A stretch of 64,000 nucleotides of DNA from Azolla caroliniana (taxonomy: Eukaryota; Plantae; Polypodiophyta): positions 1 through 64,000 of the forward strand of contig JBHGNT010000147.1 in the NCBI GenBank assembly GCA_043228905.1, written 5' to 3'. Numbering within the stretch: position 1 is the first letter of the stretch; each line of letters opens with the position of its first letter. Below are positions 7,189-64,000 of the stretch, in pieces. The position numbers were made by a program, and so were the translations under genes. The notes below the pieces were generated by a model. That model saw only the letters and a list, made by a program, of their open reading frames with translations. It ran no database searches and had not been told where the DNA came from.

Positions 7189-7214
7189 CCAAATGGCTCC
7201 GATTTTGGCCGGAC

Positions 7215-20644: not shown

Positions 20645-20687
20645 GAGACAACTAGAGTAAGATGGTTTCTACCTTAGGTGGACAACT

Positions 20688-21599: not shown

Positions 21600-22200
21600 T
21601 TCAACTATTCGGTATAGAGATGAGCTAAAACCAACATATTTATCATCAATGCATTATAAATGGATGGTTGATCTAGTGACAATGCCACTTGGGGAAGGTC
21701 AAATGCGATATTAGTACTAGCAAGAGAAGAACTTACAAACCAAGTAGAAGGAAGACCACTACGAGATAAAACAACAAGAGTTGTATGTAAATTTCTGTTA
21801 GAAGATGTAATATGTTGTTATGGGTGTGTTGGTAAAATAATTGCAGATAGAGGAGAACTTGATTCTGATGAAGCTGAAGATATAGAGCGTCAACCTGAAG
21901 ATATAGAATTAGCAGCCTAACGATTGAAGGAGGCTCGACTGAAGAATAAAATTCGTTTTGATAAAACTCCCAGAATTTGGCCTAAGAAAATAAAAGAGGG
22001 GATTGGGTACTTCTGTATGATAGCATGTTAGATAATCAACATAACACTGTCTACAAAGTTCGCTGAAAGATGGTTTGGGCCTTAGATAGTAACAAAAGTA
22101 TATGATAACTTTACTTATAAGCTTAGTGAATTGGATGAGACACTAATCCTAAATGTGGTAGCTGGAAAGAGGATAAAAGTATTTAAGAAAAGGTTTTGAG
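21600..22200 (+). pseudogene. Degenerate Ty3/gypsy integrase relic
   Basis: Translates to HYKWMVDLVTMP...LAREELTNQVEGRPL...VCKFLLEDVICCYGCVGKIIADRGEL and later RWFGP. Confidence 0.7.
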
Positions 22201-28949: not shown

Positions 28950-31900
28950 CATGTTATGCCATTCCAGGTCGCACACAATGGACTGATGCGAATATAACTT
29001 GCTGAACTGGCAAGCGGCACCAGTAAGAAAAATCGATACCCGTAGCGACCGAGAAGAGGAAGAAGAACGTTGGCATCGAGACGAGCGTTACCGGTCAGTA
29101 TAGGATGTCTGGTACAACGACAGAAGGGACACTTATGACCGGGACCGGTATGACAGGTACCGGGATTATAATGGTGACCGTTCTCATCATGATCACTCTT
29201 CGAGTTACAATCAGAGGAGAGAGGATCAACGTGGGGATTACGAAGATCGCTGCCAACAAGGATACAAGAATCACCGATGTTTTAATAAGAAATGAAATAA
29301 CCGAAAGGAGGAGCGTCGAGAACCGAAGAAGGAATACTGATGAGAGCCGGAGAGAGGCTTGAGTGGCACCCAGCCAGAACAAAGACGAATGGAAGAGCCT
29401 AATAGACCGGCAACGAGATTTCAACCAAGTACCGGGCCTAAAGCTGAATGTAGCAATACCCGGAAAGCGTATTGTTATTATTGCCGGCAGGAAGACGATT
29501 ACAGCAACCAATGCCCGGTGAAAAGTAACGAAAAGAGACCGGCAGTCAATATGGTGGTAGTATAGGTCGCCGATATACAACAAGTCACCACCAGGTCAAA
29601 AGGAAATATGACAGAGTGGGAAGCACAAGAGGCTATCCGGAAACAGGCCACCGAATGGGTAGAGAAGGCGAATGAACGGAATGCAGTTGAAGTCAAACAA
29701 CAAAAGGCGGCACCAGAGGAGCTCACCGACACATTCCAGTCAGAAAACCCAACATGGCAGGCGTTACAGGATTGTCAAATTATGTTGCCATTAGGCCGGC
29801 TACTACAATTAGTACCCTGGTTCACGGATGGGCTGAAATCGGCAAGAACACCACCAGACTCGTCGCCGGCTCTGGCTTTCTATTCCAACCCAGAGGAAGG
29901 GCCGGCGGTGGTGGACACAAGCAGTCCGGCAATCACTGCCATTGTCAAAGGACGCGAGCTACGAGGGACGATCGTCGATGGAGGATCAGACGTCAATGTA
30001 ACCAGCCTCCGTACTTGTGACACCCTGGGAATCCAGGAGTGGGAGCCTTGCCCGTTTTGGCTCTGGATGGCAGATACGAGTTCGGTAAGACCCACCGATT
30101 TAATATGAGATTTGGAGGTAACAATTGGAGGAAATGCATTCTTCATTTAAGCGGTGGTTCTCCAGTTAAATACCCAAGGGGCTTACCCACTATTGCTGGG
30201 ACGACCATGGTTGAGGATGGCGCACATTAAGCAAAACTGGCGAAAGAACGTGATTACATTCCGTCGAGGCAAAACCAAAGTACGGGTACTGACACATCCA
30301 CAAACCGGAACCGGCAAAGAGCTAACACCGTTATACGCTGAAAGTGTTAATATGCTGGAAGGGCTCGCCGATGAGGAAGTCGATCAGTATCTCGAGGATA
30401 ATCCAAAAATCTTACCTTTGTTCGAAATAGATATGGCCAAAGAAGTCTCTCTGTATATTGCACAACCGGAAGATGCCGGAGAGGAACTGTATAGAGAGGC
30501 TGTTAGAGAACTATGTCCAGCACAGGAAGCCTTGGAATGGGAAATGGCGGTATCTCAAAGGGTAAAGGCCTCCCAACTAGAGGAAGTAAACTTGGGAACT
30601 GGAGAGGAAGCACGACCAGTACATATTGCCAAAGAAATGTCACCGGAAAACAAAACGACAATGATTACACTATTGAAAGAATTCCGGGACGTATTTTCCT
30701 GGTCCGATGAGGATATGTGAGGGCTGGATCCACAACTATATCAACATCAGATACATCTCAGCAAAGACGCCAAACCGGCAGTACAAAGGCGCTACCGAAT
30801 GAACCCTAATTATGCGATAAGGGTAAAAGAAGAGATCGACAAGTTACTCTGAGTCGGTTTTATCCGGCCGGTTAAGAAAGCCACATGGTTGAGTCCGATA
30901 GTCGTCGTGCCGAAGAAGAACGGGAAGATCTAGGTGGGTGTGGGTCGATTACCAAAAATTGAATGCCGCGACGGTGACCGATGCCTTTCCACTTCCATTC
31001 ACGGATGGAGTTCTAGACGCGGTAGCCGGTCATGAGGTATATAGCTTCCTAGACGGATTCAGTGGTTACAATCAAATATGGATGCACCCCAATCACCAAG
31101 AAAAGAAGGCGTTCGTTACCAAGTGGGGTGTTTTTGTTGCCGTAGTGATGATGTTTGGACTCAAGACGGCGCCGGCTACCTTTCAACGGATAATCATGGA
31201 AATATTTGGAGAGTTCATCCCGACGTTTATGCAGGTGTTCCTAGACGACTTCGTGGTGTATAGCCGACAAGGGGAACACTTGGACCATCTCTGGTTATGC
31301 CTAGAGAAATGCAGGGGGTACCGGCTAAGCTTGAACCCAGCAAAGTGTGTGTTTGGGGTGGCTAGTGGTACCCTACTTGGCCATATAGTCAGCAAGGACA
31401 GGATAACAGTAGACCCGGACAAAGTCAGGGCAATCTTGGAGGCACCGACACCAACGACGGCCAAATCATTAAGCAAATTCTTTGGAAAAATCGGGTGGCA
31501 TAAATGGATGCTCTGGTATTTGGCAGATCTTGCAACACCGCTGCATGATGTGGTTCACCGGACATCGTTTCAATGGACGGCTATAGAGAATGACGCTTAC
31601 CGGGCGCTGTCGTGATAGTACAATTCCGGACGAGGACAAATGGCTAACGAACATGCATTAGTTCTTAAGCATGGGACTACCTCCGGAAGAGATGAACAGA
31701 GACAAGCGGAAACGATTGGCGGTCCAAAGCCGACATTTTTGTTTATTACGGGACACCCTATAGCACAAGGGAGTCGATGGAATATGGCGGAGAGCGGTGC
31801 GGAGCGATGAAAGAACACCATATTACGGGAAGCACATTGCGGAGTTGCCGGAGGACACTATGCCGGTGAAGTTACAGCAAGAAAGATATGGCGTAGTGGG

Positions 31901-36000: not shown

Positions 36001-37049
36001 CTCACCGTTGTCATGAAGTTTCGCGTGCGTGTGTCGCTTGAACGGGACCGTCGGGGCCTTGAACTAGGGAGACAAAAGAAGCGAGGATACTGGGAGATTC
36101 TGATGTCAATGACATGGGGAAAATATACATAAGTGTAGATATAAAATAGGCTTTAAACAACAATTAGACTAAATACCACGATTTCGGTGGGGTGTTTTTT
36201 ACATAGAATTGGTTTCATGATTAATAAAAACAACTATGAATCAAAACGGGTTTTTATTTTCTTTAGAATTGCTAGGCTTGACACCACGATTTCAGTGGTT
36301 TTTACAAAAATCATTATGAAATAATCAAGGCTAAAATAGTCTAGCGAAGGCGAGTCTAGTGGACTCCGAGCTCGACTACTTCCGACGGCTATGTTGCGTC
36401 GATTCGGAGTAGCCCTCGCGCCACTACAACCTCCCTTCCGCAATCGGCCTTTGAGTTTACTACCACCGAGATGCCGAAAAAGCCGTTGTTTAGGAAATAC
36501 AAACCCTAAATTGTCTTGAGTAAGAAGTAGAATAATAGAAATAAACTAAGAAACCCTAAAATTCCAAGTTCTCTAGTATGATGAGGTAGAAAAAGCTTTG
36601 AAACCCCAAGTCTAGAAGGAAAAGAAGAAGGAGAAAGGGAGGCTACAAAACCCTAACCCAAGAAGAAGAGGAGAAGATGAAACCCTAGTGGCACACCCCT
36701 AGAAGACAAAATGGGCGACCCCATAGTAAGCCTTACTCCTCCCCTCGCGCCTATTTTAACATTACATGCTTTTTTTTCCCCTTTACCACAAAAATGGAAG
36801 GGGAGCAAAATACTCCTTAATTCATCACAAGAGAGACTTGACCATTACACCTCCCCAAGTATACTTATAAGCCCTAACCACTAAGCTACTACAACTTTAT
36901 TCTTATTATTATATTTTGATTCATACATTACTTTATGTGATGTGCGTGAAACTCGCTTTTTCTCACACTATACACGCCACACCACGACACTGTCACGATA
37001 TCTTTTGTCTACGCAATGTTACACTTCTTAACGAGCCATGCCACGACAA

Positions 37050-40000
37050 CAGCAAGAACAACAACTTGTACCCACTGAACGTAATCAATCCAGAGGGCAC
37101 AATCAATATAGTCGAAGTGTCTGATGCTACATTATGGCATGGCCAACTCAACCATATGTCTCAAGCTGCATTGGACCGACTAACGACAATCGGCTACATT
37201 CCAAAGCTCCAAGTGAAGACAAACTTCTATGAGCATTGTCGGTACAGGAAACGGACCCGAAGTCTGCACTCTCTCCATTCTGAGACGGTATGGCAACCCC
37301 TAGAACTAGTCCACTCTGATATTTGCGGGTTGATGGCCAAAAGTTCACTAGGAGGCTCCCGATACTTCATCATGTTCGTTGATGATTGCACCCCGAAAGT
37401 TTGGGCTTGCTCCATTAAATCCAAAGATGAAGCTCTAGAAGTTCTCACTCAGTGGCTAGCCAAAGCAGAAAATCGATGCGGCCATAAGGTGATGACACTC
37501 AGATCAGACAACGGAGGGGAATACACCACTAGAGCCTTCGAAAAGTACTAGTCCAAAAAGGGAATCTAGTATCAAAAAACAATTCCCTACATCCCCATGT
37601 AGAACGGTGTAGCCAAACGGATGAACCGGACCATCCAACTGAGGGTGATGGCAATGCTCCAGCATGCCAGACTAAAGCTAGAGTTTTAGGCCGAAGCATT
37701 GAATATGGCAGTATACTTGATCAATCTATCGCCATCACACACAATCCGGCTCCAAGTTCCACAAGCACTATGGTTCGGCAGACAACCGACCTACGATTGG
37801 CTTCGTACATTCGGATGCGAAACCTTTGCCTTTATTCGGAGGGAGAAAAGGACCAAGTTGGCGCCCCATTCGCTCAAGTGCATTTTCTCGATTATGAAAC
37901 CGATGGGATTTTCGGACATTGGCTATGGGATCCGGAAAATCGAAAACTGATCCGGAGCAACGATGTTGTTTTCAATGAAGACTCAATTCTCTTTGGCCGG
38001 TTCCAGCTAAAAATCGGCAAAAGAATCACATTCGATCTTTCCGAAAAGAATCGGATGACAACGAACCGATTATTCACTCCGAATCGAAAATTCGGCAAAA
38101 TGCCGAACTTGAATCGACCAACAACCCCCTTGTTGAACCCAAAGACAAAAGGTCCAACAACCAACTTCGAATAGGCTCAAAGATTAACAGAGCCCTATTG
38201 GTTAAAGTAATCACCGGCCGATTTGAACCGGCCAAAGCACCAACAACACAGTCAATCACTCCCAAAAAAGAGGCTCATCCAACAACAACGCATGACAATT
38301 GCCACAAACTCTTTACAATGATTTTTCAAAGCATGCCGATCGGCCGGACAAGCCAATTGAAGAATCTGAACGGACCATATCAACGCCAAGGAGATCCGGA
38401 CGAGTCCAAAAGACAACAGAGTTCTATCAACCAAGCCTGGACTACGTCAACTATACGAATGCAGGCGAACCAAGCTACTACAAGGAAGCAATCGCCGCAT
38501 CAGATGTCAACACATGGTTATAAGCCATGAGATCCGAGATGGACTGAACTAGAGAGAACAACACATGGGAATTGGTTGAACTACCATCTAGAAGGAAGCC
38601 GCTAGCTTGCAAATCGGTCTACCGATACAAATATGTATCTGGTTCGGACAAACCCAAGTACAAATCTTGGCCTATTGCCAAGGGATTCAGAAAAGAATAC
38701 GGTGTAGACTACGAGGAGATATTGTCTCCGGTAGTCAAAAAATGACAACCCTTCAGCTCCTACTCGGATTCATGGCAATAGAGGACATAAAGCTCGAGTA
38801 GTTGGATGTCAAGATGGCTTTTTTGGACGACGATTTGGAAGAAGACATATACATGTCCCAACTGGCAGGCTTTATAAAGACGAGGGAGGAAGGTCACCTT
38901 GTATGCCAGCTAAAGAAGAGCCTTTACAGCTTGAAGCAAGCGCCAAGAATGTCCAGTATAAGAAATTTGATACCTACATCCAGCAGCTTGGATACAGCTA
39001 GTCGAACTCCGACCCATGTATGTACATTCGGAAACTGGCCAACGAGTCCAGAATCTACTCGATCTTATATGTCAAAGACATGCTTATCGGCGGTAGTGAT
39101 AAAGCAGAGATCGGAAAGCTAGAGCGGAGCCTTCATGAAAAAATTTCAATGAAGGAACTTGGAGAAGCGTAACACATATTGGGCATGAGGATAGAGTGAA
39201 ATTGGGCAAAAAAGATCCTTCAGCTCTCCCAAACTGACTACATCCGTAAGGTGCCGAAGTGCTTCAACATGGAGCATGCGAAACTGGCACTGTCGTTCTA
39301 ACTATCGGACAAAGACTCTCCATCCACAGAGCGGAGAAAATGCTCATGAGTTGAATACCCTACTCATCGGCCGTAGAAGGCTTAGGTACGTAATGATGGC
39401 GACCCGACCAGACTTTGCCTATGTCGTAGGGGTCACCAACCACTACATGTCCATTCCCAGACGGAAGCATTAGGAAGGTGTGAAGAACATATTCTGGTAC
39501 CTTCAAGGCACCGTAGATTTGTAGTTGATTTTCGGATCGAACAATTTGACCGAAGTCGAAAACCTTACGGATTCTGATTATGCTAATAACCTTGACAAAT
39601 GGAAATCCACATCAAGATATGTCTTCACCTACGGAGGCGGCGCCATATGGTGGAGGTTGAAATTGCAAGATTGCACAACACTCTCGACAACAGAGGCTGA
39701 GTACATAGCCGCATCAAACACAGCCAAGGAAGTCATTTGTTGCACAGACTATTAGTTGACTTTTCAGCCAAGAGTCAAATTGACCCTACATTATGACTCT
39801 CAAAGCACAATACACCTCACCTGGAACCTGGTATACCATGTTGTTAGGAATCGACAGGCCACAACTAGTTACACGTTCATGTTCGTGTACAGAAGCCAAG
39901 AAGTAGTACATAGACAAAAACGTGAAGACATAGAGACACCGAAATTTTACGTGGAAAACCCGAAATGGGAAAAACCACGGGGGTCCAGAAACCCCAAGGA

Positions 40001-43000
40001 AACAGATCGCTGTAGTAGAGAGGCAATACAAATACGGAACTCGGAGGCAACAACGTCGAGTTCTCCTTTGTCTAACAGACGGCTATAGAGTTACACTCTC
40101 TCTCTCACTCACGGTTATAGAGGTAACTACCTCGTTTTGACTTTTTAATAATGATCAACTACATCACACTAAAGTTTGCCCTAGTTTCTTATAAATTAAA
40201 GGAACTTTCTGGCTATTTACAAGTATAGCCCACAAGAGCATTTTAGACCATTTACAATTATAGTCTTCCAAAACGATTCGGTTTTCGATTTAGGTTTCCA
40301 CCTCGGCCGAGATACTCACCAACACGGTACTTCTCTTCCAATTCCGGAGGGACATGTTTCCAAACAAACTCCCCCTTCACTTCGGCATGGGGTACTTCAC
40401 CAAACAAACTCTCTATCGACATGTGTTTAGCTTTTCCGCTGACAGCACCTTCGTCAGCATATCCGATCCATTTTTGACCATGTGGATCTTAACTAGAGAA
40501 AACTCCTTTTCTTCTACTCGCTCTCGGAGCCAATGCTATCTTCTTTGTATGTGTTTGGTCCGTGGGTGGTAGGCGGCATTTTTCGCAAGGTGGATGGCAC
40601 TCTGGTTATCGCAATGGAGTTGGAATTCCTCCTGCCGAATTCCCAGCTAACCGATAAACTCCTTCATCCATATCATTTCCTTGTCGGTTTCCGTTGCTGC
40701 CATATATTCGGCTTCCGTGGTCGACATCGCAATGGCCTTCCGCAGCCTCGACTTCCATGAAACGACTCCCCTTGCATAAGTCATTACGTACCCGGACATG
40801 GATCGACTGGTATCCACATCAGCCGACATGTCCGAGTCAGTATAACCTTCTAGTTTGGGGTTACTTGAACCGAAATGAAGACACACATTTGAGGTTCCTT
40901 TTAGGTACTAAAGTATCCACTTGACAGCAGCCCAATGTTCTCTTCCAGGGTTGCTCATGTATCGGTTAACCACGTTGACTGCATATCCTATGTCTGGCCT
41001 GGTACATACCATCACATACATCAGGCTTCCAACCGCCCAGGCATAAGGAACTTTTGACATCTCAGCCTTCTCGATTTTCGATTTCGGACATTTTTCTTTG
41101 CTTAGCTTGCAGTTCATCGGCAGTGTTGAGCTGAATGGTTTTGCGCTTTCCATGTTGAATCTCTGGAGCACCTTTGTTACTTATTTTTCTTGTGACAGCC
41201 ACAACAATTTCTTTGTTCGATCCCGAACAATCTGCATCCCCAGGATTTGCTTTGCCGGACCCATATCCTTCATCGAGAACGATCTGCTCAAGGCTTTCTT
41301 CAACACTCGGATCTTCATATGCTCCCGTCCGATAATCAACATGTCGTCCACGTACAACATGAGGATGAGGAAATCTCCTTCGTCGAATTTCTTCACAAAT
41401 ACCCAGTGATCAACCTGCATTTTGTGGTACCCATTGTCGATCATGAAGGATTCGAATTTTCGATACCATTGTCGAGGAGCTTGCTTCAACCCGTACAAGC
41501 TCTTCCTCAATTGGCATACCAAATTTTCTTTACCTTTTTCCACGAATCCTTCCGGATGGTGCATGTATATCTCTTCCTCCAAATATCCATGGAGGAAGGC
41601 AGTCTTGACATCCAGTTGTTCGACTTCGAGGTTCATGCTGGCTGCGATGCGCAACATGGTTCGGATTGACGTTATCTTTACGACCGGGGAAAATATTTTG
41701 TCGAAATCGACGCCCTTCTTCTACTGAAAGCCTTTCACAATGATTCGTGCTTTGTACCTGGGTGGATTCCCGCCATCTCCTGGTTTCATCTTGTATTATT
41801 CCGAAGTGCCTTCTTTCCTCTTAGCAGTTCAATCAGTTCATATGTGTGGTTCTCATGCAAGGAATCCATCTCCTCCTACATGGCACTCAACCACTTTCGG
41901 CTATGGGTATCTTCCTTAGCTTCTTCATAGCTTTCCGGCTCCCTATCATTGGTTAGCAGTACACGCTCTTCATCCGGAAATCTTCAGGGGCCCCTCCTTT
42001 CTCTTAGGGGATATCTACGACCTCTATTCGGCACGGTCGGTTCTTTTTCGACGTCTTTGGCTTATTCGAATTCGGTTCCTTGTTTGGCCATTTCCCCTCT
42101 CTCTTTAGTCAGTTCTCAATTTTCCCGTGTATTAACTCGGCCGACTGGCTTGGATTCAATTTCGATGGAATCGGCTTCTACTTGATTCGGTTGAGCGTTG
42201 ACTCGGTTCGATTCGGTAGTTGGAGACTTATTCTCAATCTCCCAGTGCACTATTGTCTTTTCCTCCATGAAGACAATGTTGCGGCTCCTAATCACTTTGT
42301 TCTCGGCTAAGTCCCATGGCCGATAGCCAAATTCATCATTGCCATAGGCGAGAAATAATCATGGCCGAGATTTCGGGTCCAACTTCCCCCTCTGGTCCTT
42401 TGCCACATGCACATAACCAAGAAAACCGAACACCCTCAAATGTTGGTACAATACGTGTTTGCCACTGCACACCCTTTGTGGAATATCACCATCCAAGGGT
42501 AATGAGGGTGATCGGTTTATCATGTACGCTGCCGTCATCAACGCCTCAACCCAGAACATCTTCAGTAACCTAGCATGTGCATGCATACTTCGGACCCTTG
42601 CCATTATGGTCCGGTTCATTCTCTCAGTCAACCCATTAAGCTCTGGCGTCTTCGGCACGATATGCTCGAACTGGATTCCTTGATTTCGGCAATATTTCTC
42701 AAATGGGCCACAATACTCTCCGCCATTGTCCGCTCGGACTGCCTTCAATTTTCGGCCGGTTTCTCTCTCGGCTCTCGGTTGGAACTCTTTTAAGACGGAT
42801 AACACTTGATCCTTCGTCTTCAACACAGAAGCCCACAATTTCTTGCTACATTCATCAATGAAGGTCACGAAATATTGTGAACCACCATGTGACTTTGTGT
42901 CACATAGCATAAGTCTGTATGCACGAGCTCCAACGACATTTTCTTCCTCATCAGGGGCCTCGTTCGAAAAGATGTTCGATTCTGCTTGCCGGCCAAGCAA

Positions 43001-49297: not shown

Positions 49298-49572
49298 ATA
49301 TATAATTGTGGACAATGTAGGATAGTGAACTTTAGGATAATGTGATTGGAATGACAAACTTATTAAGGTATTTAATACTTGTATTTAAAGTTGATCTAAT
49401 CTATTTCTTAGTTTGTTCGCATGGGATCAAACCAGATGTATATAATTGTGGACAATGTAACACAATGAACATTAGGATAATGTGATGGAAATAATAAACC
49501 TATTAAGGCTTTCAATACTTGTATTTAAAACTGATCTAATCTATTCCTTAGGTGATTCACATGGGATCAAAC
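49298..49572. repeat. Tandem duplication, two copies of ~140 bp
   Basis: tatataattgtggacaatgta...taggataatgtgat...catgggatcaaac occurs twice. Confidence 0.8.
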
Positions 49573-52500
49573 TCCGAACAATAAGGCTAGTGGAACTACA
49601 AGCGTATAAAAACATGCGGATAACACTAGTGGAACCATTATCAACACACTACACAATCTAAGCAACAATGGAAGAGAAACATAATAGTTTTAACAATAGA
49701 AGACAAAAGATCCATAATATATGAACTGGTATATATTAGACACGGAATGACAATCTCGACAATTGATTGCAAATAACAACATGGACAGTCATGGCAACAA
49801 TTCTATGAGCATGTTATGTTAAGGTAAAGTTGGCTGAAGTCAGCCTTAATGTAAACTAATTCATGTTTCTCCATATTGGTAGTCAACAATGCATGCGGTG
49901 AAACCAATGTCATAAGTCAACAAACCAAGTATATAGAAATAAAATTGAAACATATAGAAGATTATAAAGAATGGAATACACCAAGTAGACCCCAAAATTT
50001 GTATTAGTAATGTGAATTCCAAACAATACATTTCGTGAACAAAAGAGTCTATTACATAGCAATCAAATCGTCAATGTCATTTTCTTCATCTCTTATAGAA
50101 GTCTCTTCGGCTATACGTGCATTGTCTTCCCCTATTAGTCGAGCCAACATAATATCTTCTATAAGCTCATCATCAAGCTTTGTTTGCTCCCCGGGTTCCC
50201 CGACTAACAGAGGAATAGGCTCTCGCGAAGCAGGTTGAAACCTTTCGGTATCAGCGAGGTTCTTTGCACCGACCTCCTCGTCCTGGTCTGGGCACTCCCA
50301 TAAAGCCTTAATCCTCATGTTTATAAATATAACTTGCTCCTCGTCCTTCTCCAATGCAACTGTGTTTCTGAAGAGCTTCAATGCACATGCAGACGTTGTC
50401 CTTATGAAGAAAGCAACAAGAAGAATTAGTTTTCAAACAAAAAAGAATTAGTACTGGTTATCTCAAGATCGTTAACCTAGTTTGAAGAATACTTGTGCCA
50501 GAAAATAGGTCAAATATCCAATCTCCTTCTATAGAAAACATCTCTATCAAGCGCATCATAAGTCGTTGAGGTTTTTGGTATGGGTTGACAAGTCCATGTT
50601 CTGTCGTGGTGACATGTCGCAATTTCCGTGTCACTGCTCGATATACCAGTAGATTTGAACCTCCGACTTCATTAGAATGCTCCTTGATTCTTTGTTTCTT
50701 TATTTCATCGAAGTAGCCAACTGTAATGTATTCAATGGCATTTATGAACCGAAAGGTTGGCCCTCTATTGACATTGGTTTTTATCCTATAACAAATATTG
50801 CGTCGAGTTAAGAAAAGATTGAACAATATTAAGAAAGGCAATATAGTGAATGAGACTTATAAACAATCCTTACCATGCAAGGTTATTGATGCCATGGCAA
50901 CGAGATCTCAAAGCTTGAGCTACCGAGTACCCTTGGTCCATACTATGAAAGACAACTATCCTCCACAAGGATGCAATCGTTAGCTCAACAAAATCCTTGA
51001 CCATCTTCTCTAACTGTTTGAACCTAAAAGGTTCATCATCGTATGATGACCCTGCCATTCGAAATCCGTATGGAATATCAGCAATCATTAGCGTATATTC
51101 CTTCTTTGGCACTTTTTGGATCATGTCAACGACATCGCCGCAAATCACGTTGTAGTAAAGATCTCTAGTAATGTCCTTTTTGTGGCTAAAGTTTTTGAAG
51201 GATCCATCTTCCTCAATTTCTTACGCCTTGACTAAGCGACGATCCTTTTCTTTTCTGGCTCTCTCGAGATGTGCAAGGAAGGATGTCGGGAAATCATGTA
51301 TATCCTTAACTTCTCCTTGTTTCTTGCCACGACACAGTTTCTAATAGAAGCAATAAGACATCAAGTATTATTACACAACCTCTACATATGAGGAAAACTT
51401 AATGAAAAACACCAATACTAACCCAATCCTTGAATGCAATAAAATACTTGGATAACGCCTTATATGAAGACGTTAGAGGATAATCCTCGGTCACTTGTTC
51501 CCAAGTTATACATCCCAGTTGTTTCATCATAACTTCTTGGATCTTTATGTACACCTTATGACTGTGAAATTAGAAAACAACATTAGAACTTTCAATTGCA
51601 CCATATTGAATTCAACATCACTATTTGAAAGACTTACTTATTGAACTCAATGACCATTTCTTCAAGGCTTAATTCTTTCACCACAACCCTTGACAAAACA
51701 GACACAAGAAGCTGCTCGTCCTTAATACCTTGCATCACTCTCCACAGAGACAGCTTCATGTCATCAGCCGCTTCTTCAATTGTCAAATCAATTTTCTTGG
51801 CTGCTTGTGACTTTAATTCTAATTGAGGGTCTACCTTACATTTCTTTTGTCGTTGACCCTTGACCTCCTTATTCTCCCACATTGAGAAGATTTGATCTTG
51901 TAGATCCCATACTTCTCCATCTCTAAAGGCAAGTTGAAACCAAGATTCATGTTTCCGAAGACCATCTGACTTAACATTATCATCCACCACAATGCTGACC
52001 TCCTGAAGGCATTGACGTCGTAGGTAGGGGTGTAGCTTCACACCAAACTTTTGTTTGACGTTCAGGTATTCATGGTGGAAGAACCTTATCCGTTCAATAG
52101 ATGACATTTTTTGCCTATAGTCGTCGTTATTGTGGTTCCATGCCAAAAGGTTTGCCTCTTTAGTTGTAAGGCCCACGTATATTTTGCACTCGGCATACTA
52201 GAAGAAGAAAGTCGTTGGATGCTTTCTAACAAGTTGTCGGCATGCTTCATCCGAATGTGATCCACCAATTACAAAGTAATTGTATTGATCATGCTTTTTC
52301 ATGTCGAAGTCCTCAGTTGTGGAACATTCTTTAGGATCTACCATCACAATGAAAGGCACAACTGTAGCATGCAGATTTATTTTCATTTTTTTCTTGAGAT
52401 TCTGAACATGCATTCGGTGTGGCTCTCTGATCTGAAGTGTTCTTCGTCACGTTTTTACATCTACTGGGTGCCAATGGATGTGTGTTATTGGCAAATTAAA

Positions 52501-52958
52501 CACTTGCCCTTTTCTCACCAGTTTGCGCTGCATTAACTCTTTCCATATCTTATTCTGCTCGGATGACAACACACCAGATGCCAACTCAACACCTTGCGTC
52601 CCCCTAGTGTCCTCATCTTCAGTTGAGCTTGATGAGTCGTAGTCCGACATTTTAGTGGTCTTCTTTTTTGCTCGTCTTGATTGCACTTTAGATGCCCTTT
52701 TTGGGGCCTTCACCGTGGAGGGAAATGGCTCCCTTAGAGTTACATGGCCTTGTATATAAGCCCTCAAGGTGACAAAAAGGTTTTGTGAGCCTTGTAGATA
52801 TTTTTTAAAAGATTCTGGCCCACAAGATTCCTTTACTAGTCGATCTTCAGAAAGGTACACTTTACGTACCCCCTTCGAACACTCTATCATTACAAGAATC
52901 TTGGCAGAATCTAAATCTTCGTAGTCAAATCGTAAAATACGACCATACATAAATGCGT

Positions 52959-53606
52959 TGTCGTGAAGATTCACGCGTGCATGTGCTACTCGAGCGACCA
53001 CCGGGGTCTTGGACTAGGGAGGATGTTCGCAGAATTATCGAAGAGATGACGATCAATGTAAGATTAGATGAAATTAGTTTACTTGAGAAGAAGAAAGATT
53101 GTACACTTGAGAAGTAGAAAAATATGAAGAAGATAAAGACAAATATAATTATATTGATGATAGTGGTGTTGGTGATATCACATATTGAGCCCCCCTTACA
53201 CAAGCCCAACTTGAGGCTTTTATAGGTCTTTCCATGCTTGTGACATGCACAAAACCATGGGCTAAAACCATGGTTTTGTGCACACGGTTTTGCTTATGTC
53301 ATGCACAAACCATGGGTTTAGAACCATGGTTTTGTGCACATGGTTTTCGAATGGTTGTTTCATCTATAATTCATATATGAAAAGTAAATACATAAAATTT
53401 ACACTATATGATAGTTGTCCTAGTGGTAAGGCAATTATCTTGTATCTTAGAGGTGCAAGGTTCAAACCTTTCTTGCACCCCTCTGTATGAACTCAAGTGC
53501 CACTAGGCCTTAGGAGGCTTATTTGCTAAGTGTATGTGCAATGTTGCACATCCTTGGTTTATTCGTCTCACTCGGTTTCACACCGTAGCCGAAAATCGTC
53601 ACGATA
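52959..53606 (-). mobile_element. Solo LTR (gypsy/Tcn1-like architecture) inserted in exon 2 of the MTase gene
   Basis: Termini TGTCGTGA...TCACGATA; 4-bp flanks GCGT/GCAC (each one change from GCGC); minus-strand TATAAAA at ~53218; CCATGG repeats; tRNA-like boxes. Removing it restores the frame NDC-AFMYG. Confidence 0.75.
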
Positions 53607-54449
53607 GCACAGTCATTTTCTAGTTGATCATCGCCCTTCTTCTTTGTCGTATACAACACGACTTTTTTCTTGGACTTGACGTACTATAGAAACCATTCCT
53701 TGTTTGTTAGATCACCGCTAGGAAGGTCCTCACCACCAGTGGCAACTAACATTTTCTTTTGGCTAATTCCGTCTGATGGTTGAGATTTTGTCTCCTCGTT
53801 GGAGAGAAGTTTTTTTCCTCTCTTCATGTTCTGAGGAACTATTTGTTTCTGGGTCTCAATTGGAGAGCCTTGAATTCGGAGCTTTATTTTCTTCACAGGT
53901 CGGTTTGACAAGTTCTCAAACAACCTATTTAAGAAAGGACGTGCGAAAATATATGTTAGTTGGTTGCCTAGATTAAGGTTGCATATTAAAATATACATGA
54001 ACAGACCAAGACAAAAACTAGCAAGCGATTTGTGCTAAACTCTAAATATCAATCATACTTTTTGTGAACATGATAGACCTTTATTGTGAATTTAAATCTA
54101 GTAAGGGCTATTCAACTTCGAATATTATATATCTTAATAATTTTACAAGGATATGTATCATATTGGAGGGTAGGTATGGTTTATATTGATTCCATATCCC
54201 ATATTGTTGAGAATTTTAATACGATAGATTTGAATTTGGTATCATAAAGGTAATTTGTGGGTTTTTTTCTATTATTTTAAGCTATTATAGGTCATAAAAA
54301 CTATTTCAATAAGGGCGCTAAATGTTACAAAATGTAGCAAATGAAACTAAAAAAGTCTGAATTGGACATAAAATTGGTATCTTTTCACACATATATCAAT
54401 ATGTTCCCCCAAAGACACAATATTCCTCTATAAAGTTTGTGTTTTATAC

Positions 54450-54631
54450 AAGAACTCGATACGCCGTATTGAGTTCCTATATAAAACACAAACTTTAAAC
54501 AGGAACTCGATACGGCGTATCGAGTTCCTGTATAAAGCGGGGGATTTAAACAGGAACTCGATACGTCGTATCGAGTTCCTATTTAAAGTTTGTGTTTTAT
54601 ACCGGAACTCGATACGCCGTATCAAGTTCTT
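54450..54631. repeat. Array of four 29-bp palindromes (AGGAACTCGATACG-N-CGTATCGAGTTCCT) with 51-bp period
   Basis: Units start at 54450, 54501, 54552 and 54603; 22-bp spacers, with AAAGTTTGTGTTTTATA recurring in both orientations. Confidence 0.95.
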
Positions 54632-54839
54632 GAGTGCTAGAACATATTTACAAAAATGTTCGTACTACCAATTGCTTACCTGGATTCTTGGTGCTCGCTC
54701 TTCTTCGAAGCCATGATTCTCGTCGTCGATGATTACGGGGAGATGACGATTTGGTGTTGCGTGCTCTGGCTTGTTTGTGCTCTGTGTGCTTGTGTGCTCT
54801 GTTCTGCACGTGAGTGGTTGCGAAATGAGGGGGTCTTCC

Positions 54840-55532: not shown

Positions 55533-58500
55533 TGTTGAGAGACAAGCTCAACATCGGCCGGATCGGTTGAAGAAGCCGAGGACCGGATCAGTTGGGACGG
55601 ATCGGTTAGGTCGTTAGGAAAGATATTCCGTGAGGAATATATTTGGGAGTTAGTGTAGGGGCTCTTAATGAGCATTGAAGTACTGTCAGTACTTCGGTCA
55701 GTCCTTCTAGGACTTGTATAAAAGTGCTCACTGAGCACGTCTTATGTACAGAGATTGAGTATTATTGTGAAATATAGTTTTTTGTGTTTCTCTCTCTGTC
55801 TCTCCCGCGTATACCGTGTAAGTCCAAGCTCTCCATTAAACCTGTGTTTCCTTCCTCTGTTCTGTCTTCAAACCTGCTTCCGCACGCTACTTTCTACATG
55901 GTATCAGAGCGCGAGGGTTGAGAACCTCTCTGCAGCCGACACAGCTTGACGAAGAAGAACAAGAAGAACGATGGATAGAGGCATGGCGAGCTCGCTTCCA
56001 ATAGAGAAGCTCGACAGAACCAACTACGCGTCTTGGTCCTACAAGATGCACCAGTACCTGCTCGGGCATGGCTACTGGAGTTATGTCGAAGGAGCTAATG
56101 ACGCGGCACCCAAATCGACACAGAGAGACTTTCCGTCGTGGGAGCAATCAGCGAGCAGGGTACTATACTGCTTCGCGTCGTGTGTGGGCGAACAGCTATT
56201 GAGCTATGTTCGGGAAAATCTGAAGAAGATCTGAAGAAGATCTTCCCCGCGAGCACCATAGCCAGGAAGCTTAAGCTTCGACAGGAGTTGAGCAACCTAT
56301 GACAACGCGACTTGTCGGTGGCGGACTATACCTCGAAGATCAAGGATATCTGCGACTCCCTCGCCTCCATAGAGGTGAACATCGAGGAGAGCGAGATGGT
56401 CCAGATCTATCTCGGAGGTTTGGCGTCGAAGTTCGGAGCGTTCCGAACGGTTGTGTGTACCCGGGAGAATACGTCGTCCTTTTTCGACTTACAGTCGATG
56501 CTCTTGGTAGAGGAGAACCACGCGGGTGCGTCGACAAGCACGCACACCGACAACAAGATGTTGTACACGGAGGGAGAAAGGCCCCATGGTCGTGGCGGAC
56601 GAGGCGAGTCGGTACGCAATGGAAGCGGTCGACAAGATCAAGGAGGAAGGCACCGATGTGATGCCAACAGCAACTCTGGACCCTCCGGAAACAGGGGGAG
56701 TCAAAGCGATGAGAACCGGCAAGGGAAGGCCATAGCGGAGTGCTGGTACTGTGGCAAGAAAGGCCACAGGGAAAGCGAGTGCTGGAAGAAGCGCGCCGAT
56801 TCGAAGAGAACTGGTCCTGGGAACGACTCCAGACATACCGACAAGGGAAATCGGCAGTGATCGCACTACGCCAAAGACTCCGGGAGAGCTGGAGAAGGGT
56901 CTGTCTTCGTGACGAGACACGAAGCAAACTCAATGAAACAGAGCACCCCGAGATCGGACGAGGTGTGGTACGTAGACTCCGGCGCGTCAAACCACATGAC
57001 GAGCCATAAGGAGTGGTTCTCGTACCTTGAGAAACCGATACAACCGGGAGTAGTCTCAACAGGAGACGACACTCCGCATCCGATCGCGAATGTCGGAGAA
57101 GTTCCCCTTAGCCATGTCGGGCAGAAAGGGAAACTCAAGAACGTGTTGCACGTTCCGACAATCACAAAGAACTTGGTCTCGGTCGGACAGATCGTCGACC
57201 AAGGGATGGAGGTTCGGTTTACACACCTCGGGTGCTTCATTGAGGAAGAAGGCCGTGTGATTGCGCAAGGGCGCAGAGACGGGAGGATGTTCATCCTCGA
57301 CTCCACTGACGGCGGCACCGCAATGTTCACGAAGGGACAAAAGACCGAGTCGGACATCGACTTGTGGCACAAGCGGATAGGCCACGTCAACTACCAGCGG
57401 CTTCAAGGTCTGCAAACGAAACAGGTAGTGTTCGGTTTGCCCAAATTTAGTGGCCGAAAGGCACAAGTTTGTGAAGCCTACCAGCTTGGGAAGCAACACC
57501 GACTTCCCTTCCCCAACGAGCGAAACCGGAGCCGGAACAAGCTCGACCTTATACACTCCGATGTATGGGGGCCGGCACAAAACGTTAGTCTTGGCGGGAG
57601 CCGATATTTCGTCTCCTTCATCGACGACCACACGCGGCACACGTGGATCTACCTCATTGAGAGGAAGAGCGAAGTCTTTGACTGTTCGTGGAATCCGAAA
57701 CGGGACGGAAGATCAAGTGTCTGCGGTCGGATGGCGGGAAAGAGTACTTTTCCGGTCAATTCAACGGTTATCTACAACAAATGGGAATTCGGCGCGAATT
57801 CAGTTGTAGATACACGCCAGAGCAGAACGGCGTGGCCAAGAGAAAGAATCGGTCGATTGTGGAAGCGGCACGGGCAATGCTGGAGGAGAAGAGCTTGCCC
57901 AAGTTCTACTGGGCCGAGGCGGTAAGGACCGCGGTATACATCTAGAACCGGATTGGAGACAAAGTGTCGGCGCACGAGCTATATTTCGAAACGAAGCCGA
58001 ACTTGCGACTCTTGAGGGTGTTCGGTAGCATTGCGTATGTGCATGTACCGAAGGAGAAAAGGAGGAAGCTAGACGCAAAGGCCGAGAAGTGCATCTTGGT
58101 CGGTTACTCGGACGGGCAGAAGGGTTATAAGTGCTATAACCCTCGCACCAAACAAGCGCGTGTCAACCGCGACGTTGTTTTTGACGTGTCCACGTCCTGG
58201 TACCTACCCTTGCCTCGGAACCCTGACTCCAATACGAGCTCTGACAATGAGGTCAGCGAGGCCGAGATGCCTCCGGATGAGCCCGAAATCGAGACCCGCG
58301 AAGAGAGTCCGATTTCACTCCGGTTAAGTGGACCGATTGGACGACTGAGTTGGTACGACCAGTCCGATGAAGAGCCGGCGAGTAGTGAAGACTCGACCAT
58401 GCATTCCCCGCGCAGGAAGCCGAGGAGACGGCTTACGCGCAAAGAGAAAGGGAAGAAGAAGGTGTCGGATTCCGGCACGGATAGGAACAAGTTAGACCGA

Positions 58501-61164
58501 CGCGAGTCCGACTCTGAGGGAACCGGTGACGGGTCTTTGAAGGTGAAGACCGTGTCGGCCGAGAAGGCCTCGACATCGGCTGATGTGAGATTACGCCGAT
58601 CTACCCCTCAATAGAACCCAGTTGTGCGGTTCGGATACAATGAGTACATGGCGCATCATTATGCGTACATGACCCGTGTAGCGGAAGTGCGTGAGCCGGA
58701 GAGCTACGCAGAAGCGGCGAAGGACGCGAATTGGCGCGTCGCGATGGAGGAAGAGATGCACGCATTGGCGGAGAACGAGACCTGGGACCTGGTTGACGCA
58801 CCGAAGGGTGTGAAGCCGATCGGGTGTAGGTGGGTGTACAAGGTCAAGTACAACACCGATGGCTCGGTTAACCGGTACAAGGCTCGGCTAGTGGCAAAGG
58901 GCTATGCGTAGAAACATGGCATCGACTACGATGAGACGTTTGCGCCGGTCGCGAAAATGACGACTGTCCGTGTTTTGCTGGTAATAGCCGCGGCCAAGGG
59001 GTGGCACTTACATCAGATGGATGTAAAGAATGCGTTCCTGCAAGGTGACCTTGAGGAACAGGTGTACATGGTACAACCCCCCGGATTTCACTCCGGCACG
59101 AACTCCTCGGCAATATGCCGACTGAAGAAGTCCCTTTACGGACTGAAGCAAGCCCCGTGTGCCTGGAACACGAAGATAACGCAACAACTGCGTCGGATGG
59201 GCTTCGTCACGTCAAAATCAGACTCTTCCCTGTTCATCCGGAAAGGTCGACTCGAACCGGTTAGTATTTTACTGTATGTTGATGACTTGGTCATCACCGG
59301 CGCCGACCTAGGTGAAATCGACCGCGTGAAGCTCCAGCTTGCGGCATCGTTCGACATGAAGGATCTGGGGGACCTTCATTACTTCCTCGGGATCGAAGTG
59401 ATCCGTACCCCCGAAGGCATATTGATTAGCCAACGTCATTACGTGCTGAGTATGCTCTTCAAGCTCGGGATGGCCGACTGTAAGTCCGTCTCGACTCCTC
59501 TGGATAGAACCGTGAAGCTTCATCCCGATACGGGAAAGGAATGCGACCCGACGAGGTTCCGACAAATTGTCGGAAGCCTCATATACTTGACCATCACCCG
59601 ACCCGACCTCAGTTATCCGGTCGGGGTGATCAGTCAGTTCATGGCGCGACCTACCGAGGAGCACCTTCAGTGTGCGCAACGCATACTTCGGTATGTCAAC
59701 GGCACTAAGGATCGGGGACTGCTATATCGGACTGGTGCAGCCGCACAGTTAGTCGGCTACACCGATGCTGATTGGGCTGGCAACGCCACCGATCGCCGAT
59801 CCACGTCTAGATACACGTTCTCCCTCGGGAGTGCCTCGATCGCGTGGAGCAGTAAGAAGCAGCCGACAGTTGCACTGTCGAGCACCGAAGATGAGTACCG
59901 AGGAGCAGCTGTCGCGACATGCGAAACCATATGGTTGAAGCAGCTACTTAAGGACCTGCAAGAGGAGGTGTCTAATCCAACGACGATCTACTGCGACAAC
60001 CTCAGCAGCATCCAACTCGCGAAGAACCCCGTCTTTCACGTACGGACCAAGCACATTGAGGTGCACTACCACTTCGTCCGTGAGCGTGTCCTTTCCGGTG
60101 AAGTCGAACTTCAGTACGTTCCGACGGATCGGCAGGCTGCCGACATCTTCACCAAGCCTCTTGGTCTGGACAAGTTGCGGCAATTCTCAGTTGCGCTCGG
60201 GTTGCGTCACCTTGACGTGCCGAACTTGAGGGGGAGAACAGTCCCGAACGACCAAGCAAGGCAGCAGGAAAGGAGCGGTGACCATGACACCGAGTCGTTT
60301 GACTCGTTTGTTGACTCGGCTGAAGACGGATCGGCTGAAGAAGCCGAGGGCGACTTCGGATCGGCTGAAGAAGCCGAGGACGGACCCGCGGAGAAGTTCA
60401 AAAGCGGACAGAAGGGGAGCAGCCGAAGGAGAGAGCCGAAGCCAACCACGGATAGGGGAGATGACGCCATTGAGGGCGAGAAAACCGAAGACGAGTTGGA
60501 GACAGCCAACTCGGACGAGAGCGAAAACCGATCGGAGGTAGCCGAGTCGGTTCGGATGTTTGATTTAGATAAGCTGAATCAACCGAGGCCCAAGCGGAAG
60601 AAAAGGCAGCAGAAGAAGCGTCAACACCGCAACAGCAGAAGAGCTGATAAAGGCCGCATAAGCATACAAGCCGACCGGAAAGGTCAAAGCGCGCGGAGAC
60701 GAACAGGTCGAGGAGCGCGAGCGAGGCGTGAAGCCAGGAGGAACCGGAGCCGTGAGCTCGAGGATTCCGAAGAGCCTCGAGTTGAGCTTGAGGGGGAGTG
60801 TTGAGAGACAAGCTCAACATCGGCCGGATCGGCTGAAGAAGCCGAGGACCGGATCGGTTGGGACTGATCGGTTAGGTCGTTAGGAAAGATATTCCGTGAG
60901 GAATATATTTGGGAGTTAGTGTAGGGGCTCTTGATGAGCATTGAAGTACTGTCAGTACTTCAGTCAGTCCTTCTAGGACTTGTATAAAAGTGCTCACTGA
61001 GCACGTCTTATGTACAGAGATTGAGTATTATTGTGAAATATAGTTTTTTGTGTTTCTCTCTCTATCTCTCTCGCGTATACCGTGTAAGTCCAAGCTCTCC
61101 ATTAAACCTGTGTTTCCTTCCTCTGTTCTGTCTTCAAACCTGCTTCCGCACGCTACTTTCTACA
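55533..61164 (+). mobile_element. Full-length Ty1/copia 'H'
   Basis: 366-bp LTRs at 55533-55898 and 60799-61164 (about 7 substitutions by eye); perfect TSD ATAGA; PBS TGGTATCAGAGC at 55899; PPT TTGAGGGGGAG; gag-PR-INT-RT-RH. Confidence 0.97.
55971..60804 (+). pseudogene. copia H gag-pol with extended charged C-terminal tail
   Basis: IEKLDRTNYASW, CWYCGKKGHRESEC, WYVDSGASNHM, LWHKRIGH, RSDGGKEY, LLYVDDLVI, IYCDNLSSI, ADIFTKPL; the ORF then continues ~190 aa into the LTR. Confidence 0.93.
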
Positions 61165-61270: not shown

Positions 61271-63922
61271 ATGAGTGAAGACTCACCGTTCTTGATTGAA
61301 GAATATTGTTTGTCATCAGACTTTGCCTTTTCCATTGAAAAGTATTGTCTTTTAACAGACTCACCATTTTCTATTGAAGAATAATGTCTGTCGACAGACT
61401 CACCCATTTCTATCGAAGAGTATTGTCTGAGCTCATCTTCACCTACAACACATGTGAATAATGACACATGTGAAGAGTTCTCTATTGAAGTATACAATAT
61501 TAATAAAGATACGGAGAATGAAGGTAGTGCCAATGAAACATCGAATATCATGGGTGATGGTCACAACAAAGAATTGGATTGTAACAAGGTTACCCCAACT
61601 TCTATACAGGAAGAGAAATCTGGAAGCCCTATGCATATTAGAAGAATCCCATGTAGAATTCGTCTAGCCAGATTTAACTTGGTGACATCAGATAAGCAGA
61701 TTGGATTTGATGTCAACAAAATATGTTTTGCCCGTGGTTGTATGTCTATGATTGGAAAATCAAAGTTGTGAGAATTAAGGCATAATATTTTTCGATGACT
61801 ATTGATGACCAAGACACTTACCTCGGGTCACATATGCAACTAGTGTCTGACAAATGTACGGGGATCAAATAAATAGGTTCCAAGTATTAAAGGTGCAATT
61901 GGAAGACATGCTATTGGTTGGATAAAAAGTTACTTTCAGTTAAATTGTGAGGTAATGCCCACTACAGGTAGGATGCACGTCTCTGATAATTACACACGTC
62001 GGGAAGTTAATGATGTCTATCGATCAAATATGGTGGGCTCACGTAATAAATCTGTCACATATAGCCAATTCACAAGATTATGGAGAGCTCGGTTTTCAAA
62101 TGTTATCATTCTGCATAAAGTACGCATGGGGTATTGCTCCATTTGTGCAAATCTTAAAAGTTTGGCTAAGGTGCAAAGACATCAATGGAAAAGGATATCA
62201 TTAAGAAGTTACTACAGGAGCATCGTGAGGCACAATCATTAGAATGAAAGAAGGTGATGCATCATAGAGAGAAGTGTTTGAAGAGGCCCGAATAATACAT
62301 GTGCTTAACGATAGATGGCATGGACCAGAAGAAGACGTGCTTGCCGCATATGCAGAGGCTCCCCAAAGACATCAATGATGAGTGCCTTGTTCAAATGCAC
62401 TTGGTGGGATGCTTGGCTTATAATAGGTCTGTTGGACCTCACATCTTCATTACATACCCCAATGTTCACAATGACCCTAACCTAACAGTTACAGTGATTC
62501 ACCAAGTTTTGATGTCTTGGGGCCAACCGTTCCCCCCTGTTCTATACATTCAATAGGACAATACTACTAGAGAGAACAAAAATTCAACTATGTTTGGCTA
62601 TCTAAGTATGTTGGTCAACCAAGGATTGTTTAGAAAAGTGAAAGTCAATTTTCTTTTGGTTGGCCACACACATGATCATATAGATAAGATATTTAGCACA
62701 TTCTCTAGACAGTTGTCTCGGCATGATGCTTTCACATTACCAAAACTATTTGATGTAATTTGTGATGCATACACACCACGCCCAAAAGTGTTACACTTGA
62801 AGGAGGTATATGACTTTAAGAGATATATATTAGATGGGGGTGTTGGGAATGTTAAAGTGCTCGCCCAATTAAACAATATAAGATTCAATCACATTTTTAT
62901 GATAAAGAAAAATGAAATAAGTGGTTCTACGCTTTTGTATGCTAAACAATATTCATCTTCTACAACATGGGAACCTGAAAGGTGGTTTCCAGTTATTACT
63001 TTGTATGCCGAGTACAGTTGTCCATGGAGCTAAATAAATGCCAATTGAGAAGAAAGGATAGTTGCATAGTGACTTGGTATCGGAACAAAAACAATTATGG
63101 CTCCAAGCCTTAGAAGAAAAAAGAAAGCATATTGAGGCCGCAAAGAAATATGCCGCACAACAAGACACATCATGGTGGGATGTATTTTTCAGTGATCAGA
63201 AAGGAATTATAGACAATTGTGTATTTGGTGATAATTGGAATTTGGAAATGCCATTCACATGGTCGCTACAACATGATCGTGTAAATAAAACTCCGGAGCA
63301 ACCAACAAATGCGATTAATGACAGTTTGGTCCATCCACAACAAAGAGACATTTATGTGGGACCAAGGATGACCAAAGCAGCCGAAGCTAGATGGCAAGGC
63401 AATTTGCAAGAGCTCACGGTGGGGATGTTGATTGCAACACCGGCTGATGAGAACTCACATGGCCACCAATTTTGGGTTGGTAAAATTCTAGAAGTGCTAA
63501 TGCATGAAATAGAAAACACGATCAAGTCTATAAACGTTCATTGGTACAACACTAGAAATGCAAATGCTTTTACGGTTAAGTATACATTGGAGAGGATTGA
63601 ATGCCCAACGACAAGGGGAAGTAGGAAGAGGAAGCGAAACATTCGTAACACCTCGAACCTTGATATCTCTGATGTGGATATCATCGTGTACGACTTCACG
63701 CTTACAAAAGCCGGACGATTAAGGAAGTCAACAATAGATATAATAAAAGAAAAATTACTAGGTCTACAAGGTGGCTCGAGTCGAAGGCAAACGAGATCTG
63801 CTACATATAATCTAGAGTCAAACCATTTGGTTTATGACGAAGATAATGCACTGATTGGTACATCTGTGGATGACGAGGAGGAATCGTCATTGTATATTAG
63901 TTATAGTAGCGATTCTCCGTAA
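61271..63922 (+). pseudogene. Sola1-like DDD cut-and-paste transposase (DUF7869-like), disrupted
   Basis: YSQFTRLW..RF...CSIC, catalytic-type motifs TIDGMDQKK, LYIQ*DNTTRENKN and FLLVGHTHDHIDKIFS; C-terminal FWVGKI...INVHWY module; stops and frameshifts. Superfamily assigned from remembered motif similarity only. Confidence 0.75.
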
Positions 63923-64000
63923 AGGAGTGATCATGAATGTATTTTTGGCTATTAAGTGTAACTACATTCCGCTTGTAACAAATCGAGTAAAAGTAAAGGA

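Follow-up and report, generated by a model that had tools for sequence, protein, structure and literature searches.

Does a cluster of short open reading frames (ORFs) on the minus strand of a fern contig hide a single spliced gene, and what would a gene that joins a ParB-like region to a DNA methyltransferase be doing in a plant genome? The cluster runs from position 54714 to position 50052 of the first 64,000 nucleotides (nt) of contig JBHGNT010000147.1 of Azolla caroliniana. This 64-kb stretch is called the window here, and coordinates given without a locus name refer to it. The locus is probably a dead copy of the accessory (passenger) gene of a streptophyte cut-and-paste DNA transposon that occurs in multiple copies. 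A sequence-only reading had proposed a prokaryote-type enzyme adapted to plants. Splicing and a prokaryotic or phage-type ancestry of the gene are supported, but the gene appears as an accessory of a transposon rather than as a lone hidden host enzyme.

Homology searches used single exon pieces or intact relatives as queries. The relatives cited by name are the proteins P0004 (Ginkgo), P0062 (Chara braunii, GBG86584.1), P0123, and P0176 and the loci L001 (Adiantum), L002 (Riccia sorocarpa), and L003 (a public contig with a related copy). The gene model is as follows.

54680 to 54714, minus strand: putative exon 1, ATG plus 35 nt, then a GT donor
53925 to 54679, minus strand: putative intron 1, 755 nt, GT..AG, housing a palindrome array
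53612 to 53924, minus strand: exon 2, first part, a poorly conserved N-terminal region matched by tblastn of the related ORF fragments P0176, P0177, and P0178
52960 to 53611, no strand assigned: secondary insertion in exon 2, 652 nt, frame-shifting, with GAC on either side
51638 to 52959, minus strand: exon 2, second part, an N-terminal beta-rich region, a ParB/sulfiredoxin (Srx)-like core, and a helical middle domain resembling a helix-turn-helix (HTH) region
51637 to 51562, minus strand: intron, 76 nt, GT-AG
51423 to 51561, minus strand: exon 3, 139 nt, between the 76-nt and 82-nt GT-AG introns, matched by tblastn of P0060 and P0132
51422 to 51341, minus strand: intron, 82 nt, GT-AG
50874 to 51340, minus strand: exon 4, the linker and the first half of the methyltransferase domain, matched by tblastn of residues 350-446 of P0004
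50873 to 50786, minus strand: intron, 88 nt, GT-AG
50493 to 50785, minus strand: exon 5, with W/IKTN (the slash marks the splice junction), NPYQKP, and the start of motif I (FSGT); its final base is A, not G
50492 to 50402, minus strand: intron, 91 nt, donor GT and acceptor AA
50052 to 50401, minus strand: exon 6, which completes motif I ([G]TT) and the methyltransferase domain and closes with an acidic tail and the stop codon, matched by tblastn of residues 548-638 of P0004

The four short introns are the firmest part of this model. Their boundaries had been proposed exactly to the base, and all four recur at identical position and phase in the fern Adiantum. Removal of the 88-nt intron restores a Trp codon (TG/G) followed by I-K-T-N, and removal of the 91-nt intron restores the second glycine codon of motif I (F-S-G-T-[G]-T-T), which here reads AGG. 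The Trp-codon intron is also present in the liverwort Riccia, and the motif I intron is absent from it. At the 5' end, the acceptor TTAAATAG/G of putative intron 1 and its pyrimidine tract are both kept in L003. The proposed 755-nt intron (54679 to 53925) is therefore plausible, with a conserved acceptor side; exon 1 (12 codons), modeled from sequence alone, is also plausible but goes no further than that. Each exon of the window gene was covered by tblastn of proteins from the Ginkgo, Adiantum, Riccia, and Chara set. A spliced eukaryotic gene with a ParB/Srx-like N-terminal region and a beta-class N6_N4 amino-methyltransferase is thus supported.

The overall length of the earlier six-exon model, 2919 nt, required one correction. 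With only the five listed introns removed, the exons add up to 3571 nt and the reading frame does not hold; the difference is exactly the 652 nt from 53611 to 52960, which that model had skipped without mention. Locus L003 aligns to 54383-53613 (74%) and then continues straight to 52955-52301. Because its flanks directly adjoin, the 652-nt stretch is an insertion in the window copy that is missing from L003, and because it has no GT start and shifts the frame, it is not an intron. Within it lie a 56-bp palindromic repeat, in two tandem copies (53235-53347), and a tRNA-like, short interspersed element (SINE)-like stretch (about 53404-53506); ARAGORN called no tRNA in it. Contigs of a public sequencing run match the insertion at 85-95%, which indicates that it is itself a repeat family.

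The C-terminal part of the predicted protein belongs to the N6_N4 methyltransferases. The exon 5 piece matched Pfam PF01555 (N6_N4_Mtase) with 32.9 bits (cutoff, 26.7; E value, 8.4e-8), P0004 matched it with 65.7 bits, and several relatives carry the domain. On the minus strand, DIPY (motif IV, 51068-51079) is followed by NPYQKP (50569-50586) and FSGT[G]TT (motif I, 50505-50392). This order, with motif IV ahead of the target-recognition region and motif I, is the beta-class arrangement, as the sequence-only reading had recognized. A profile of the methyltransferase region (A3) matched solved structures from the W-x-K-P-N block through QKP to motif I. The best match was the DpnA-like M1.HpyAVI (5hek; E value, 1.3e-13), followed by the other N6-adenine enzymes CcrM (6pbd; 2.3e-11), M.MboIIA (1g60; 4.4e-11), and M.RsrI (1eg2; 2.2e-9). 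Matches to N4-cytosine enzymes were weaker (8.5e-6 for 8s9m/8s9n, annotated as "DNA cytosine-N4 methyltransferase," and 2e-3 for PvuII). Because the best A3 matches are N6-adenine enzymes and motif IV has an Asp, N6-adenine is somewhat favored over N4-cytosine as the predicted target base, without the matter being settled. The four N6-adenine enzymes share the motif order of the plant family, but they are stand-alone bacterial enzymes with DPPY and without a ParB-like part.

Motif IV itself departs from the canonical (D/N/S)-P-P-(Y/F/W), with a hydrophobic residue in place of the first proline. The unusual DIPY had been pointed out before; it is non-canonical but not private to the window copy, as the whole family has D-x-P-Y/H (DIPH in Ginkgo P0004; DFPY, DAPY, and DLPY in other relatives), with D, the second P, and mostly Y retained. 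From Chara to ferns and Ginkgo, the family keeps the D, P, and Y of motif IV along with QKP and FxGxGTT.

Upstream of the methyltransferase, a ParB-like core was located at about 52100-52440 (motif GGSHS), with the ParB-like block of the sequence-only reading at about 52200-52440, followed by the HTH-like middle domain at about 51638-52100. An AlphaFold model of residues 120-440 of relative P0123, built on a 24-row alignment, had a mean predicted local distance difference test (pLDDT) score of 79.5. In a Foldseek search, the top 24 rows were all ParB, Noc, KorB, or Spo0J proteins, with weak E values (about 0.05-0.9). Realignment of the model gave Z scores of 7.4 for PadC (2.8 Å over 86 residues), 7.1 for Caulobacter ParB (2.5 Å over 85 residues), and about 5.5 for Arabidopsis Srx. 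Longer alignments reaching into the ParB HTH region (KorB, ParB-N; 175-191 residues) gave only a Z of about 6 and a root mean square deviation of about 5 Å. The model of this relative thus gives moderate support to a ParB/Srx-like fold of the N domain. A chromatin-reader-like beta barrel at the N terminus was considered and rejected: the AlphaFold model of P0176 was poor (pLDDT, 51), and a wide structure search returned unrelated rows with Z scores below 5.

The gene belongs to a widespread, multi-copy family. An exhaustive HMMER search with a 180-amino-acid (aa) piece of exon 2 found 163 relatives at an E value of ≤1e-3, and those named come from Ginkgo biloba, a fern (Adiantum nelumboides), a liverwort (Riccia sorocarpa), and a stonewort (Chara braunii). 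For one exon part, 45 distinct ORF fragments with 50-87% identity were found in public assemblies, and Ginkgo has at least five gene models (paralogs). When the Ginkgo methyltransferase domain was used in a word-based search, the only matches were paralogs from Ginkgo itself and a few metagenomic proteins, with no Marchantia DN4MT1 among them. In a comparison with a related copy, the ratio of nonsynonymous to synonymous substitution rates (dN/dS) was 0.29 for 229 codons in the least conserved region, with the frame read through stops and the exon 2 halves joined over the 652-nt insertion. Most of the divergence between copies therefore arose under selection on the protein. The Chara protein P0062 (1825 aa) has two ParB-like cores (about 96-193 and 1072-1167) as well as two methyltransferase segments, and it probably represents two tandem copies merged by annotation.

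Evidence for a transposon comes from the neighborhood of the gene, where two plus-strand features lie beyond its 5' end.

55533 to 61164, plus strand: Ty1/copia long terminal repeat (LTR) retrotransposon with LTRs of 366 bp (98.1% identical), TG..CA ends, and a 5-bp target duplication (ATAGA)
61955 to 63922, plus strand: DUF7869 transposase-like gene (Pfam PF25273; E values, 1.7e-27 and 5.7e-9)

The DUF7869 gene is spread over several frames, being decayed and/or spliced, and is divergent from the minus-strand methyltransferase gene. The same divergent pair, with the DUF7869 homolog upstream of the methyltransferase gene, was found by tblastn in Adiantum L001 and Riccia L002. The copia element, with gag, integrase, and reverse transcriptase ORFs, is fairly young and sits as a nested insertion between the two DNA-transposon genes; before it arrived, the methyltransferase and DUF7869 genes stood head to head. 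Clusters of proteins resembling the DUF7869 product are labeled mostly as arthropods and rotifers, and none of the papers found in our literature search mentions DUF7869. In Riccia L002, DUF7869 genes at 4215-8109 and 18543-21752 flank one ParB-methyltransferase gene within 20 kb, which suggests adjacent or nested elements.

The second shared component of the layout is an array of palindromes.

54451 to 54630, no strand assigned: four perfect or near-perfect 27-nt palindromes starting at 54451, 54502, 54553, and 54604, at a spacing of exactly 51 bp

A scan for the palindrome pattern gave 4 matches versus 0.00 expected. The array sits just within the 5' end of the methyltransferase gene, in putative intron 1. 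Riccia L002 likewise has an array between its two genes (9557-9733; period, about 50) and another in an intron, and Adiantum L001 has arrays between its two genes (16939-17275; period, 31/62) together with palindromes in an intron. The palindrome sequences vary by species, and the layout is kept. The counterparts of the 82-nt intron in Adiantum (L001 21253-21448) and Riccia (L002 11513-11830) are longer and contain palindromes of the family, and the 82-nt intron of the window contains none. A 121-bp repeat that bears a palindrome occurs directly downstream of the Riccia methyltransferase gene (L002 13377-13614).

The window copy itself is inactive. The four in-frame stops of the earlier reading were all located.

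53684-53686, minus strand: in-frame TAG, exon 2, first part, where relatives have Q (CAG>TAG)
52447-52449, minus strand: in-frame TGA, exon 2, second part
52198-52200, minus strand: in-frame TAG, exon 2, second part
51221-51223, minus strand: in-frame TAA, exon 4

To these premature stops are added the frame-shifting insertion, an AG>AA change in the last acceptor, and, in motif I, a Gly>Arg replacement. At the last junction, Adiantum reads ACA G/GT...ATAG/GG and the window ACA A/GT...ATAA/GG. Both lesions are thus G>A, because Adiantum has G at both places, and the claim that both junction Gs had mutated was correct. As a result, the second Gly codon of motif I reads AGG (Arg) in the window; the motif is intact in Ginkgo, Riccia, Chara, and Adiantum (SGSGTT or AGTGTT). 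The accompanying proposal of decay by C>T/G>A changes fits the two junction lesions and the CAG>TAG stop. As a sole process it is unsupported, because the two stops in the second part of exon 2 align to G and K in relatives and imply G>T and A>T.

Elsewhere in the window, a 140-bp tandem duplication (49299-49572; 2.0 copies, 85% matches) lies 480-750 bp past the methyltransferase stop codon and may be either an unrelated miniature inverted-repeat transposable element or part of the subterminal region of the transposon. The remaining sequence consists mostly of retrotransposon remains (3750-7188, 25153-28344, 30938-31615, and 36916-43000). These include, at 3.7-7.2 kb, a Ty3/gypsy pol region with RVT_1, RNase H, and SH3_Tf2-1; a fragment of RVT_1 near 31 kb; and pieces of copia pol at 25-28 kb (in a G+C-rich block, about 0.5) and at 37-43 kb.

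What would intact copies do? They would have about six exons and encode a four-part protein of about 970 aa, with a lineage-specific region at the N terminus, a ParB/sulfiredoxin-fold domain with a helical ParB-HTH-like DNA-binding domain, a linker, and a methyltransferase. The last part would be a beta-class S-adenosylmethionine (SAM)-dependent DNA amino-methyltransferase, kin to DpnA, CcrM, M.MboIIA, and M.RsrI. The gene would stand divergent from the DUF7869 transposase-like gene of the element, with phased palindromes in between or in the first intron. The ParB-like/HTH part would bind these palindromes, as ParB does parS, and would thereby bring the methyltransferase to the element, where it would write N6-methyladenine (6mA; somewhat favored) or N4-methylcytosine (4mC) on transposon DNA. 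Such a mark might, for example, label self DNA, or it might help the element to escape or to enlist silencing by the host. Self-targeted methylation through palindrome binding, drawn by analogy from proposals made for algae, is a tentative idea to which we assign well under an even chance. It is rather unlikely that intact members in land plants (ferns, Ginkgo, and liverworts) and Chara are active self-targeting writers of 6mA or 4mC on their own transposon.

Several points weigh against this interpretation. The profile of alignment A2, which like A1 covers the family region in the second part of exon 2, found nothing relevant to ParB among PDB sequences, and ParBc (PF02195) matched neither the window pieces nor the relatives; a weak DUF6551 match appeared in 4 of 24 members (best E value, 0.0031). 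Because sequence profiles miss ParB, the ParB-like block noted by the sequence-only reading depends on the moderate structural match to the model of P0123. The family consensus is G-G-x-H-S-x-x-A (GGSHSDEA in the window), and the position of the arginine in the ParB GxxR motif is Ser or Thr in all aligned members. Since this arginine is replaced family-wide, binding of or switching by CTP is not to be assumed, and nucleoside triphosphate switching is unproven. Catalysis is likewise unproven, as the PP of the canonical motif IV is missing throughout the family. The window palindromes are candidate binding sites for the ParB-like/HTH part, and their binding is pure inference. Neither terminal inverted repeats nor a target-site duplication of the DNA transposon was found; its right end lies past base 64000. 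The transposase is of the DUF7869 type by sequence, and Repbase and fungal transposon papers yielded no Sola1 signature usable for testing. Finally, two small sequencing runs, nearly without sequence of the locus, gave at 80% likeness a few short contigs of related copies or of the inserted repeat and no joints.

It is accordingly worth asking whether the family protein is a DNA methyltransferase in practice. It might only bind DNA or RNA, or methylate RNA or protein, and the palindromes might serve the transposase or be subterminal repeats. Transposases commonly bind subterminal and internal repeats, DPPY or SPPY occurs in zero family members (Ginkgo P0004 even has DIPH), and ParB is not matched at the sequence level. 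However, the conservation of motif IV D/P/Y, QKP, and FxGxGTT across the family, from Chara to Ginkgo and ferns, speaks against it, the closest solved relatives are all DNA methyltransferases, and the gene is under purifying selection. The palindromes also occur inside introns of this gene in Adiantum and Riccia and hence travel with it. We regard this explanation as unlikely.

Still less probable is that the locus is a pseudogene of an ordinary single- or low-copy host gene, domesticated like Marchantia DN4MT1, that happens to lie amid transposons. The conserved introns and the purifying selection between copies would suit such a gene, a liverwort has a functional 4mC methyltransferase of the beta class as a host gene (10.1101/2021.02.12.428880), and in a transposon-rich window any linkage could be accidental. 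An accident would nevertheless have to account for a head-to-head DUF7869 partner and a palindrome array in three distant species, for dozens of diverged copies with several paralogs in Ginkgo, and for two DUF7869 genes around one Riccia locus within 20 kb. Chance ORFs or bacterial or phage contamination, suggested by the fact that a ParB and N6_N4 methyltransferase pair is typical of phages and prophages (PMC12704722), are refuted by GT-AG introns that break conserved motifs at sites common to other plants. Plant retrotransposons nested within and around the gene also speak against them, as do a tblastn search of 50,697 phage records, which gave zero matches to the exon 5 piece, and the best homologs, which are plant proteins.

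The proposed transposon accessory gene has close parallels in algae. The giant Sola-1 DNA transposon Sola1-1_Ec32 of Ectocarpus carries a gene for a 1104-aa protein with ParB-like and N4C/N6A methyltransferase domains opposite its transposase (Genome Biol 2025, PMC12477816). The two systems are alike in the size of the accessory protein (1104 aa versus about 970 aa), in the proposal that it binds and marks its own element, and in the placement of its gene on the strand opposite the transposase, as in the window, Adiantum L001, and Riccia L002. They differ in host and transposase: the Ectocarpus element is a 21.5-kb Sola1 element of a stramenopile, and the window transposase is of the DUF7869 type. 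The window has a palindrome array, and the available part of that paper makes no mention of one for the Ectocarpus element. The likeness is one of description and may reflect either homology or convergence.

In the red alga Bostrychia moritziana, the Plavaka protein PAG3 combines a ParB-like domain with an oxygenase and adjoins tandem inverted repeats, and for this protein the authors proposed binding to, and modification of, the element that carries it (10.1101/2025.02.11.637652). PAG2 and PAG3 resemble the plant family in fusing a ParB-like N-terminal domain to a nucleic-acid-modifying enzyme and in having inverted-repeat arrays inside the transposon. Their partner domain is a 2-oxoglutarate (2OG) oxygenase, however, and an N6-adenine methylase is on a separate protein with a SET domain (10.1101/2025.02.11.637652). 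Plavaka is also a different transposon superfamily, called EnSpm in the Ectocarpus paper (PMC12477816).

Fusions of ParB-CTPase and N6_N4_Mtase domains are common in phages and prophages (PNAS 2025, PMC12704722), and methylases occur in ParB-terminase loci (Iyer et al., PMC4738411). Their two-domain logic is identical to that of the plant family, of which they are the likely ultimate gene source. The phage and prophage genes are intronless and usually have GxxR and DPPY, whereas the plant family has GG-x-H-S, D-x-P-Y/H, introns, and extra N-terminal and linker regions. No streptophyte clade of this kind appears in the survey of Iyer et al. (PMC4738411). Other beta-class amino-methyltransferases of bacterial origin reside in eukaryotic nuclei, namely, Marchantia MpDN4MT1a/b and bdelloid rotifer N4CMT. 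The former belong to a liverwort, a lineage that also carries the plant transposon family. Both belong to the host and have had their 4mC activity demonstrated; the available parts of the sources report no ParB-like domain in them. It is a possibility that host enzymes such as the 4mC methyltransferase of liverwort sperm were domesticated from elements of this kind.

The combination of a ParB-like domain and a DNA-modifying enzyme in a transposon has thus already been published for brown and red algae. Our literature search found no description of the ParB-methyltransferase design in land plants, and the window adds a well-resolved land-plant member. The copy is broken and cannot act; its value lies in its exact exon structure, shared introns, history of nested insertions, and precisely phased palindromes. 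Amino-methylation of plant DNA (6mA and 4mC) is contested, and few writers are known. If the proposed function is true, a conserved and selected transposon-borne ParB-like methyltransferase, found in lineages ranging from stoneworts to Ginkgo and ferns, would be a concrete candidate for such a writer, and its transposon would be a mobile element bearing a DNA-marking enzyme together with the sites that recruit it.

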